From sequence record NC_042013.1: a stretch of 64,000 nt of DNA, one strand, 5' to 3'. Shown here piece by piece: positions 20,248 to 43,696 of the stretch. The notes beneath the pieces were generated by a model, which saw only the letters and a list, made by a program, of their open reading frames with translations, made no database searches and was not told the origin of the DNA. The position numbers and the translations under genes were made by a program. How positions within the stretch are numbered: the stretch's first letter is position 1; the number at the start of each line of letters is the position of its first letter.

Positions 20248-20275
20248 AAAAAAACCAGCCTTTCGGCTGGTTTTT
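20248..20275 (-). terminator. intrinsic terminator closing the tRNA/ncRNA operon
   Basis: CCAGCC-GAAA-GGCTGG plus U tract on minus strand. Confidence 0.85.
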
Positions 20276-20338
20276 CAAAGCAAGGAGTGCTAATCGGGTT
20301 TTTTCTATTCCAAAGATAACCAAAAAGCTTCGGCTTTG
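20276..20338 (-). ncRNA. 63-nt repeated small-RNA element, copy 1
   Basis: CAAAGCCGAAGCTTTTTGGTTATCTT-variable-ATTAGCACTCCTTGCTTTG; second copy at 40642..40705. Confidence 0.65.
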
Positions 20339-20341
20339 TAG

Positions 20342-20426
20342 CGTTACAGATGGCATTCGAAGCCAAACCATCCCCACCATCAAAGTGCTATCGTATGCCG
20401 GTCTTCTACGATAGTGGTCTGTAACG
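20342..20426 (-). ncRNA. tRNA-like structured RNA abutting tRNA-Cys
   Basis: 9-bp closing stem CGTTACAGA/TCTGTAACG, T arm TGGC-TTCGAAT-GCCA, 8-bp internal hairpin. Confidence 0.7.
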
Positions 20427-20502
20427 TGGAGGCGCGGGTCAGGGTCGAACTGACATAAATCTCCTTTGCAGGGAGCTACCTAACCATTCGGTGCACCGCG
20501 CC
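20427..20502 (-). tRNA. tRNA-Cys (GCA)
   Basis: GGCGCGG/CCGCGCC acceptor, loop CT-GCA-AA, U73, encoded CCA. Confidence 0.95.
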
Positions 20503-39936: not shown

Positions 39937-39991
39937 AATCTCCTTAAACGTTTCGATTTAAGGAGATTATCACAATCAGAAATAATGTCAA
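39937..39991 (-). promoter_or_regulatory. sigma70 promoter whose -10 lies in a 12-bp anti-SD stem
   Basis: TTGACA-16-TAATCT; 39937-39948 pairs with 39957-39968. Confidence 0.75.
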
Positions 39992-39997
39992 CTATTA

Positions 39998-40465
39998 TTA
40001 AAGTAGTTTTAGATCGCCAGTAATTGGTTCTAGATTTTTATCGATATCAGGACCAATAGCCATTGCTGTCCACGTTGGAACACCTTTGAATTCCGTTTTT
40101 CCAGCATCTTGAATGGCACTTACAAGCAAACCAGCCTCAATTGCTTTTCGTTCAATTTCAAAGAATTCTTCCTCAGAATCAACAGAGACGCAAATCTTCG
40201 TAAATGGACCACGTAGCCATCTTTTGACACGGTAATCATCGCCATACTTGATATAAGTAAGCTGGCTTGCATGAGAAACTTGTGCAGCAATTTTGCCTTT
40301 TCTCATATTCAAATCTTTTCTAACTACGATGATTTGTTTGTAATAAAGATTTCTAAATCGGTCTAAAAACGCATCGATCTTTTCAAAAACGAGATTACCG
40401 ATATGATAAAATCCGATGAGCATCAAAACCATCATAGAAAATTTAATCAATCCGTCAATGTCCAT
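39998..40465 (-). CDS. pth2: peptidyl-tRNA hydrolase, Pth2 type, with N-terminal hydrophobic extension
   Basis: VVRKDLNMRKGKIAAQVSHA, DAGKTE, TAMAIGP, ITGDLKLL. Confidence 0.93.
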   Translation of the reverse strand: MDIDGLIKFSMMVLMLIGFYHIGNLVFEKIDAFLDRFRNLYYKQIIVVRKDLNMRKGKIAAQVSHASQLTYIKYGDDYRVKRWLRGPFTKICVSVDSEEEFFEIERKAIEAGLLVSAIQDAGKTEFKGVPTWTAMAIGPDIDKNLEPITGDLKLL

Positions 40466-40606: not shown

Positions 40607-40632
40607 AAAAAATAGCCGCATTAAGCGGCTAT
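40607..40632 (-). terminator. intrinsic terminator after repeat copy 2
   Basis: TAGCCGC/GCGGCTA plus U tract. Confidence 0.8.
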
Positions 40633-40641
40633 CTAAAAAAT

Positions 40642-40705
40642 CAAAGCAAGGTTTGTTAATTGGATGTTTCATAAGCAATAAGATAACCAAAAAACTTCGG
40701 CTTTG
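40642..40705 (-). ncRNA. 64-nt repeated small-RNA element, copy 2
   Basis: 25/26 identity at the 5' end and 16/19 at the 3' end with 20276..20338. Confidence 0.65.
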
Positions 40706-40722
40706 AAATTACATATTACCCG

Positions 40723-41019
40723 TTAAAGGGTAGTATTGTCAATAATTTTATATCGAATAATGTCATTTTCTGAACCATAATGATCCCAAGGAACCTCATT
40801 TGATCTTACGATGATAGGGGTATCATTTCCACGCCGCACAATCATCACCGTTTTTCCACTAACGTTAGCAGGATAATTAGACGTATCACAACCACACCAC
40901 CAGCGCCAGCCGTCCTCGGCTTCTCTCGTCAACTTTAGAATATATTCGGCCAAAGCATTTGCGGACGAGGAGTTAATATCGTTTGCAATTTCATTAATTT
41001 TTTTATTTAAGTAGTCCAT
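40723..41019 (-). CDS. hypothetical protein
   Basis: C-term W.H.GSENDIIRYK. Confidence 0.6.
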   Translation of the reverse strand: MDYLNKKINEIANDINSSSANALAEYILKLTREAEDGWRWWCGCDTSNYPANVSGKTVMIVRRGNDTPIIVRSNEVPWDHYGSENDIIRYKIIDNTTL

Positions 41020-42463: not shown

Positions 42464-42733
42464 TTACGGAATCCATCTCGTCTTTTCTGGATTTTCTGTA
42501 TAACCTCTATAAATGAGATTTTCTGTCAGCCTTTCATATTCGTCGGTCGTAACTTTCAACATAACCGCGATATTACCAGACCATAGATTGGGATTACTAT
42601 TATAAAGTTCGATCATCCCATTAGTTTTTTCAATCCACCGTGATTCTTTTTCCTCATCGGTCATTTCTGGTTCATAGACCAAAATGTAATTGTAATATGC
42701 ATTTTGCCAATCGGTAATAATCTTATTTGTCAT
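42464..42733 (-). CDS. hypothetical protein
   Basis: SD AAGGTGG. Confidence 0.55.
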   Translation of the reverse strand: MTNKIITDWQNAYYNYILVYEPEMTDEEKESRWIEKTNGMIELYNSNPNLWSGNIAVMLKVTTDEYERLTENLIYRGYTENPEKTRWIP

Positions 42734-42817
42734 GTATGCCACCTTTCATATTTCCATATAACTATTATCAAAATGTCAGGGGTTAGTCAATCTAAAAAGT
42801 ATGAGTTAATGATATGA

Positions 42818-42823
42818 TAAATA
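42818..42823 (+). promoter_or_regulatory. late promoter core TAAATA
   Basis: 30 nt upstream of gp26. Confidence 0.6.
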
Positions 42824-42853
42824 ATCGTACAACGATAAACTATAGGTTTAATT

Positions 42854-43696
42854 ATGACAAATCCAAACAACCCATTGTCCCAATATTTCCGCATTCCCGG
42901 CATGCACGTTGAACTTCCAAGTAAAGGAAATTTCAATGATCCTTCGGAGTTCAAGCGTAGTATGAACGGTGATTTTGAGGTGTTCCCGATGACGGCTGCT
43001 GATGAAACCTACGCCAAGAATCCAGATGGGTTGCTAAACGGGCATTCAATCGAACGTATTCTTAAAAGTTGCGTACCCGGTGTAGCAGACCCTAAGAAAC
43101 TTCCGACGCAAGATGTCGACTACTTACTCTTAGCTATCAAAAAATGTAGTTATGGTCGTGAATTAAAGTTAGAGGTTAGCTGTCCTAAGTGCAACAAGGA
43201 ACACGCGTTTTCTTGTGATATCGATGAATTGCTATCGGATGTAAAGCCATTTGAAGAATCATATGAGGTTCGTATTTCCGATGAAATGGTTATTAATTTA
43301 CGTCCATATACCTATGAGTCATCTACTAAATTAAATATGGCTGCGTTTGAGGAAGCTAAATTATTTGCTTCTGTTTTAGATGTTGAATTTACCGAAGAAC
43401 AGAAAGGTGAATTGTTTTCAAATAGTCTCGAGCGTATTACTGACCTTAACCTTGAACGATTGGCAGATTGTGTAATATCTGTTTCAGTGCCGAATGGTGT
43501 TGTTACAGACTATGAAAATATCAAGGAATTTATTAAGAATACAGACCGTGTTACTATTAACAAAATTAAAGAAGTATTAAAAACTTCGGCGGATTGTGGC
43601 CTTAATAAAAAGATAGATGTTACTTGTCCGACAGAAGGCTGTGGCCATGAATATCAAACTGATCTTATTTTTGATCCAGCACATTTTTTCGCATGA
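42854..43696 (+). CDS. gp26: baseplate hub subunit (T4 gp26-like)
   Basis: LPSKG, PMTAADE, D.DYLLLAI...SYG, CPKC and C-term CPTEGC. Confidence 0.85.
   Translation: MTNPNNPLSQYFRIPGMHVELPSKGNFNDPSEFKRSMNGDFEVFPMTAADETYAKNPDGLLNGHSIERILKSCVPGVADPKKLPTQDVDYLLLAIKKCSYGRELKLEVSCPKCNKEHAFSCDIDELLSDVKPFEESYEVRISDEMVINLRPYTYESSTKLNMAAFEEAKLFASVLDVEFTEEQKGELFSNSLERITDLNLERLADCVISVSVPNGVVTDYENIKEFIKNTDRVTINKIKEVLKTSADCGLNKKIDVTCPTEGCGHEYQTDLIFDPAHFFA

Follow-up and report, generated by a model that had tools for sequence, protein, structure and literature searches.

In enterobacteria, DapZ and MicL are small RNAs (sRNAs) that derive from the 3' untranslated region (3' UTR) of an mRNA and have an internal promoter. 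Operons for tRNAs also give rise to trailer RNAs, such as the sponge 3'ETS-leuZ of E. coli and RNA C and RNA D of the phage T4 tRNA cluster, and OmrA and OmrB are a paralogous sRNA pair arranged in tandem, whose ends are nearly identical and whose centres diverge. Short structured RNAs that occur in twos are also found in phages, namely, nutL and nutR of lambda and putL and putR of HK022; nutR is located between cro and tR1, and the genes downstream of it need read-through. Jumbo phages carry large sets of translation-related genes, and to our knowledge almost nothing is known on their non-coding RNAs.

The genome of Agrobacterium phage Atu_ph07 encodes 33 tRNAs, two peptidyl-tRNA hydrolases, and a CCA-adding enzyme, and the genome paper, which lists the tRNAs together with four tRNA-processing proteins, is silent on small RNAs, promoters, and terminators (PMC6102473). 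We analyzed the last 64 kb of the phage record (MF403008 / NC_042013, 490,380 bp), a stretch of 64,000 nucleotides referred to below as the window, in which a short element occurs twice, once at the end of a tRNA-Cys operon (copy 1) and once upstream of a peptidyl-tRNA hydrolase gene (copy 2). Our preferred reading, to which we give an even chance of being right, is that the element forms part of a small non-coding RNA gene of approximately 100 nt belonging to a two-member family of the Atu_ph07 clade, with an origin from a promoter or from processing and an action in trans.

The systems named above are compared with this pair by their layout and not as homologues. Like DapZ and MicL, copy 2 has a promoter-like site in the end of the upstream coding region, a terminator in common with the parent mRNA, and an expected length of approximately 100 nt, whereas it has no sequence relation to them, its promoter is a candidate only, its host is an alphaproteobacterium, and the gene is borne by a phage. 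Like 3'ETS-leuZ and RNA C and RNA D of T4, copy 1 is a spacer that extends from a tRNA-like unit to the terminator and would be freed by tRNA 3' processing; however, copy 2 lies outside any tRNA operon. The near-identical ends and the divergent centre of the two paralogues recall OmrA and OmrB, but in our pair most of the conserved 5' end is predicted to be paired, and the copies, separated by 20 kb, are not a tandem pair. As with the nut and put sites, a short structured RNA occurs twice in a phage, and copy 2, like nutR, is located between a gene end and a terminator with genes downstream that need read-through, although no boxA-like motif is visible, a single extended hairpin takes the place of the two put stems, copy 1 precedes genes with their own promoter, and many terminators of Atu_ph07 have no such element. 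The RNA pair is most likely a clade-restricted phage small RNA and not a new kind of system, and its importance is moderate. Since one conserved RNA family appears once in a tRNA operon and once before a peptidyl-tRNA hydrolase gene, it offers a concrete and cheap experimental entry point.

The repeat pair and its two loci

The features of both loci are listed in Table 1. All genes surrounding copy 2 are on the minus strand, and the annotation in the phage record is empty between the gene for a 98-aa protein (ORF98) and the peptidyl-tRNA hydrolase gene (pth2). A sequence-only reading of the window had described copy 2 as a second copy of a structured element, 17 nt after the stop codon of ORF98 and directly before a terminator, and our alignments and positions agree with this description.

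Table 1 Features of the two loci (positions in the window).
Feature	Position	Strand	Basis or remark
ORF98 (upstream gene; hypothetical protein)	40723..41019	-	TAA stop at 40725-40723; without Pfam family
Candidate sigma-70-type promoter in the last ORF98 codons	40713..40742	-	Consensus scan, 10/12 matches
AU-rich 17-nt spacer from the ORF98 stop to the repeat	40706..40722	-	Contains the -10 hexamer
Repeat element copy 2, 65 nt	40641..40705	-	Fold; copy search; 60/65 kept in lineage B
U6 linker (40640-40635), terminator hairpin (40634-40611), and U tail (to 40607)	40607..40640	-	
ORF39, unannotated, hydrophobic, 39 aa	40473..40592	-	Start 14 nt past the U tail
pth2, peptidyl-tRNA hydrolase (PTH2 family)	39998..40465	-	PF01981, E = 9e-31
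Repeat element copy 1, 64 nt	20275..20338	-	Last unit of the tRNA-Cys operon
Copy 1 terminator	20248..20274	-	Sequence unrelated to the copy 2 terminator
tRNA-Cys	20427..20502	-	ARAGORN and Rfam

A repeat finder and pairwise alignments matched copy 2 (40705-40641) with copy 1 (20338-20275). The two copies share 25 of 26 positions in the 5' arm and all of the last 11 nt, whereas the centre is diverged and there is one 1-nt indel. No third copy was found in the 490-kb genome, either with up to 4 mismatches or with a covariance model at E ≤ 10. For the two 26-nt blocks, which differ at a single base, 490 kb contain no further match even when 4 mismatches are allowed, and both copies are retained in diverged relatives; the pair is therefore beyond chance, and the genome-wide count of copies, which the sequence-only reading had proposed as a check, is exactly two. 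The same reading had named membership in a larger duplication as the result that would speak against it. The flanks of the two copies do not align and their terminators are unrelated; the similarity reaches precisely to the two ends of the closing helix P1 (see below) and no further, and hence the repeat is not part of a larger duplicated segment. The statement that the core is variable held for the centre, including the string quoted there, while a role of this core in specificity did not emerge, and the invariant 5' arm proved to be the most constrained part of the element in the sequences compared. A small peptide encoded in the RNA was considered and rejected, since copy 1 offers no equivalent of the AUG-led frame of copy 2 and the 1-nt indel separates the copies.

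At the first locus, the order of the operon is promoter, tRNA-Cys, a tRNA-like RNA, the element, and the terminator. The tRNA-like RNA is a hairpin of approximately 85 nt that ends at 20342, between tRNA-Cys and copy 1. Copy 1 thus extends from the last tRNA-like unit to the operon terminator, which is the position of a 3'ETS-type trailer and applies to copy 1 only; it would be set free as the 3' trailer of the operon of tRNA-Cys and the tRNA-like RNA. Immediately past the copy 1 terminator is an independent promoter for the next genes. The MF403008 annotation retrieved for this stretch did not list the tRNA-Cys gene itself.

Both copies are terminated by a GC-cored hairpin followed by U6-7, that is, by an intrinsic terminator as expected of an sRNA gene. 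The terminator of copy 2 is a 10-bp hairpin with a GC core, amounts to approximately -16 kcal/mol (calculated by difference), and begins 6 nt after the element.

Common fold and conservation between lineages

Both copies adopt a common predicted fold consisting of a 6-bp helix P1, an internal loop, a 3-bp helix P2, a 4-bp helix P3, and an apical loop of 23 nt. In copy 2, P1 pairs 40705-40700 with 40647-40642, P2 pairs 40695-40693 with 40657-40655, and P3 pairs 40690-40687 with 40663-40660, leaving 40686-40664 as the apical loop, the 5' part of which (UUAUCUU) is common to both copies. P1 is built from the two ends of the repeat, and its pairing probability was 0.96-1.0 in all four natural variants. 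The RNA would accordingly consist of a 65-nt three-helix hairpin (P1, P2, P3, and the 23-nt loop), a short linker, and the intrinsic terminator, approximately 100 nt in total, with predicted 5' ends located 1-5 nt before P1 for both copies.

The differences between the paralogues include a compensatory change in P2 from C-G to U-A and a change in P3 from U-G to U-A. When the 13 pairs were examined in five distinct sequences, all 65 pair cells (65/65) were standard pairs. Of the 18 variable columns, 3 were among the 26 paired positions and 15 among the 39 unpaired ones. The observed covariation rests on one compensatory event among very few changes, and it was equalled in 60 of 500 column shuffles. 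The pattern of variation fits a structured RNA, judged from these few events.

Close relatives were collected from ENA and Logan assemblies by way of the flanking proteins and fell into two lineages, one close to the isolate and the other, lineage B, metagenomic and diverged. At copy 2, the flanking genes of the lineage B sequence L088 show 73-89% DNA identity to those of the isolate, a value that drops to 50-75% at third codon positions, whereas the spacer is identical at 17/17, the element at 60/65, and the linker with the terminator at 32/33 positions. The last ~78 nt of ORF98 belong to the same conserved block, with 95% identity between lineages against approximately 73% for the remaining gene. 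Copy 1 behaved similarly in lineage B (L104 / L099): the third positions of neighbouring genes are 54-70% identical, and the corresponding values were 45/45 for the promoter, 71/76 for the tRNA, 76/85 for the tRNA-like RNA, and 61/64 for the element. Both copies are present in both lineages, and therefore the duplication is older than the lineage split. The 5' arms differ at one of 26 positions in spite of near-saturated neutral divergence, which is not expected without selection or gene conversion; no shared derived change that would point to gene conversion was seen in the sequences compared.

We also considered the possibility that the pair is a decaying and functionless duplication that has been conserved through recent recombination tracts or by hitch-hiking with the adjacent promoter and terminator. 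The lineages are indeed recombination mosaics; L097 and L099 show 100% identity over approximately 700 nt immediately upstream of copy 1. Moreover, 11-20% of equal-sized segments are at least as conserved as the element, which places it only within the top 11-20%, and there are just two copies and no homologues elsewhere. However, the paralogues have kept 25 of 26 bases of the 5' arm in common although they are older than the lineage split, and the tRNA and the tRNA-like RNA of the copy 1 unit differ by 7-11% between the lineages, which argues for an old tract under constraint and against a recent exchange. Furthermore, conservation ends exactly at the U tail at both loci, and the substitutions of lineage B in either copy avoid the helices, all of them being at predicted unpaired positions. 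A decaying duplication consequently appears doubtful to us. In these alignments, the element is conserved far above neutral sites, and the proposal of the sequence-only reading that its retention in two contexts reflects selection on the RNA itself was strengthened, since both copies predate the lineage split and have stayed conserved. For the sRNA that we prefer, the likely functional surface would be the invariant 5' arm together with the 5' part of the loop.

Two further observations were made in these assemblies. In L099, an ORF102 of lineage A (the ~700 nt identical to L097) is joined to a tRNA-Cys operon of lineage B; this hybrid make-up indicates a recombination breakpoint between ORF102 and the tRNA and shows that the phage genomes are mosaic. 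In L096 (2911-2950), the loop of the copy 2 terminator, TTAAT, is changed to its reverse complement ATTAA with the stem unchanged, which, from the sequence, looks like an inversion of the hairpin loop.

Relatives, known families, and possible targets

Four pattern scans found no homologue of the element in IMG/VR, the JGI metagenomes, or the GTDB genomes (one per prokaryote species). A looser pattern for the loop gave 26 matches in IMG/VR, none of which passed the covariance model, and 126 loci of distant relatives (80 around PTH2 homologues and 46 around homologues of the AAA protein) gave no significant match to this model. Likewise, tblastn revealed no close relative among isolated phages, and ORF98 had no relatives in IMG/VR. 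As far as these databases reach, the element is a two-member family restricted to the Atu_ph07 phage clade.

With Rfam 15, no family reached its gathering threshold for the element, and in the window only two tRNAs were found. The best sub-threshold scores were driven by the terminator: BjrC1505 with 30 bits against a threshold of 50, GcvB with 23 against 42, and RNAI with 28 against 47. BjrC1505 (RF02356), an alphaproteobacterial sRNA, shares with copy 2 the arrangement of hairpins followed by a GC-rich terminator, and it gave the best Rfam score for copy 2, 30.2 bits (gathering threshold, 50); however, the alignment was carried by the terminator of copy 2 without recovery of P1 to P3, and copy 1 gave no match.

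The conservation of the 5' arm as a sequence, and not merely as pairs, would also be compatible with a site that acts as DNA, such as a protein operator or a signal for recombination or replication, and the location of copy 1 inside a tRNA operon with a degenerate tRNA fragment. The GCU(N3)UUGGUUA of the element, by eye, resembles a tRNA D arm, which we take as a point for this reading. On the other hand, ARAGORN found only tRNA-Cys, even with the threshold lowered to -ps80 and with the -mt models that allow armless tRNAs, and a tRNA or pseudo-tRNA was rejected on this basis; moreover, 65 nt are too short for a cloverleaf. As for a DNA site, only two sites exist, both in the same orientation and within transcription units, and the compensatory change and the same-strand location before terminators fit an RNA better. 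We therefore regard a DNA site or a tRNA fragment as very improbable.

The trans-acting sRNA that we prefer would work by base pairing or by protein binding. No target in the phage stood out. In its genome, antisense k-mers to the element were no commoner than those to shuffled queries, and the duplex energies against 1077 candidate phage translation-initiation regions were weaker than those of shuffled controls. The best contiguous complement has 12 nt (genome positions 175099-175110, minus strand), is directed to the conserved UUGGUUAUCUUA of copy 2, and is located at the junction of a stop codon and a ribosome-binding site before a 66-aa ORF; this match is within chance expectation.

Candidate promoters, possible processing, and read-through

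The candidate promoter of copy 2 has a -35 hexamer TTGACA at 40742-40737 and a -10 hexamer TAATAT at 40718-40713, separated by an 18-nt spacer; the tRNA-Cys operon promoter likewise has a spacer of 18 nt. The predicted start of transcription (~40706-40704) coincides with the first base of the repeat, and the block that contains the candidate promoter is conserved in lineage B. In the genome, 84 sites of the form TTGACA-N16-18-TAnnnT were found against ~32 expected (~2.6-fold), and most of the intergenic ones are 24-36 nt before a ribosome-binding site. This excess and this placement suggest that such promoters are used by the phage, although about 38% of the promoter-like matches genome-wide are expected by chance, which makes any single match uncertain. 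According to our proposal, the copy 2 RNA would be transcribed from a sigma-70-type promoter of its own within the end of ORF98, be cut from the ORF98 mRNA, or both; in the case of cutting, RNase E could act in the AU-rich 17-nt spacer.

A small hairpin (UACCC / GGGUA) at the end of ORF98 (40711-40726, minus strand), with the stop codon in its loop, lies in the candidate promoter's spacer and shows no change in lineage B. Elsewhere in the genome, a repeated cassette of promoter and leader (TTGACATTATTTTT, followed by GTATAACTTAATCATCGAAACGAATTAAGGAG) lies upstream of many genes, at genome positions 71957, 73648, 85880, 115613, 164238, and 169407 among others and in the region of window position 39991; its leader can form a hairpin beside the ribosome-binding site.

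No genuine RNA run containing the phage was found. The only run labelled RNA-Seq, from wastewater, gave a 262-nt contig over 40537-40798, and this run was rated as probably DNA. A contig from a DNA run has almost the same limits, indicating that the limits reflect the assembly of a conserved block and not a transcript; such contigs attest the presence of the sequence and not the ends of an RNA. The run gave only three contigs on a 6-kb stretch, the second of which (42648-42869) covers a divergent intergenic region between an ORF at 42464-42742 on the minus strand and a T4-baseplate-like gene that starts at 42854 on the plus strand. This contig, too, probably reflects a conserved block rather than expression.

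Downstream of copy 2, no promoter for ORF39 and pth2 was found after the terminator, where there is no room for one, and the next TTGACA promoter comes only after pth2. As this holds in both lineages, transcription of pth2 must pass the element and the terminator. Judged on its sequence, the copy 2 stretch is as much the leader of ORF39-pth2 as the 3' UTR of ORF98. The term 3' UTR in the sequence-only reading is consequently only one reading among others in view of the promoter-like TTGACA-N18-TAATAT within the gene end and of the leader. The promoter candidate inside the end of ORF98 and the dependence of the promoter-less ORF39-pth2 on read-through are new here.

This arrangement bears on the main rival reading, in which the element is a cis-acting RNA that controls the adjoining terminator, as an attenuator, as a nut/put-like antitermination site, or as a module for the stability or processing of the 3' end; at copy 2, it would set the amount of transcription that reaches ORF39 and pth2. 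The distance from the element to an intrinsic terminator, 0-6 nt across both copies, fits this reading, as does the location of ORF39-pth2 directly past the terminator with a need for read-through, and the layout is similar to that of lambda nutR and of the two HK022 put sites. In addition, 8 bp can form between the conserved GGUUAUCU and the 5' arm of the copy 2 terminator, and 6 bp between UUGGUU, which overlaps GGUUAUCU, and the corresponding arm of the copy 1 terminator, even though the terminators differ in sequence. However, neither full-length nor truncated folds contained an antiterminator within 2.5 kcal/mol, the 5' arm of the terminator was free in the truncated folds, and an alternative local 5' hairpin would cost 4-9 kcal/mol. 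Copy 1 immediately precedes the next genes' own promoter, so that read-through is not needed there. A crude scan of the genome showed that at least 17 of 75 strong terminator-like hairpins have a gene within 45 nt and no element nearby, although some of the 17 may be hairpins of ribosome-binding sites rather than terminators, and this suggests that read-through does not generally need the element. Finally, only two copies exist among dozens of promoters in the genome. We consider control in cis unlikely, while rating it above a decaying duplication.

Two specific forms of it found no support, namely, an attenuator or riboswitch, for which no competing antiterminator structure was found within the above 2.5 kcal/mol, and a nut/put-type site of processive antitermination, in view of the two copies only, the 17 or more other hairpins without the element, and the independent promoter after copy 1. 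We infer from the repeat, its fold, and its conservation that the flagged element is probably a real phage sRNA that acts in trans.

The sequence-only reading had placed copy 2 in a context unrelated to tRNA. This is not clear-cut, because the peptidyl-tRNA hydrolase gene begins 142 nt downstream. A more far-reaching and rather doubtful idea is that a single RNA family with two modes of production (release as a tRNA operon trailer, and transcription from a promoter in a gene end) acts on the translation and tRNA side of infection, for example by setting the read-through into the pth2 operon via RNA polymerase or a phage factor in a put/nut-like manner, or by binding a tRNA-handling protein jointly with the tRNA mimic next to it.

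The annotation of Atu_ph07 overlooks RNA genes as well as at least one gene for a small protein. The reading frame of ORF39 is retained (~32 aa) in lineage B despite strong divergence. Its hydrophobic product has a single transmembrane-like segment, and its stop codon is within ATGTGAGG, adjoining the start of pth2 and overlapping the ribosome-binding region of that gene.
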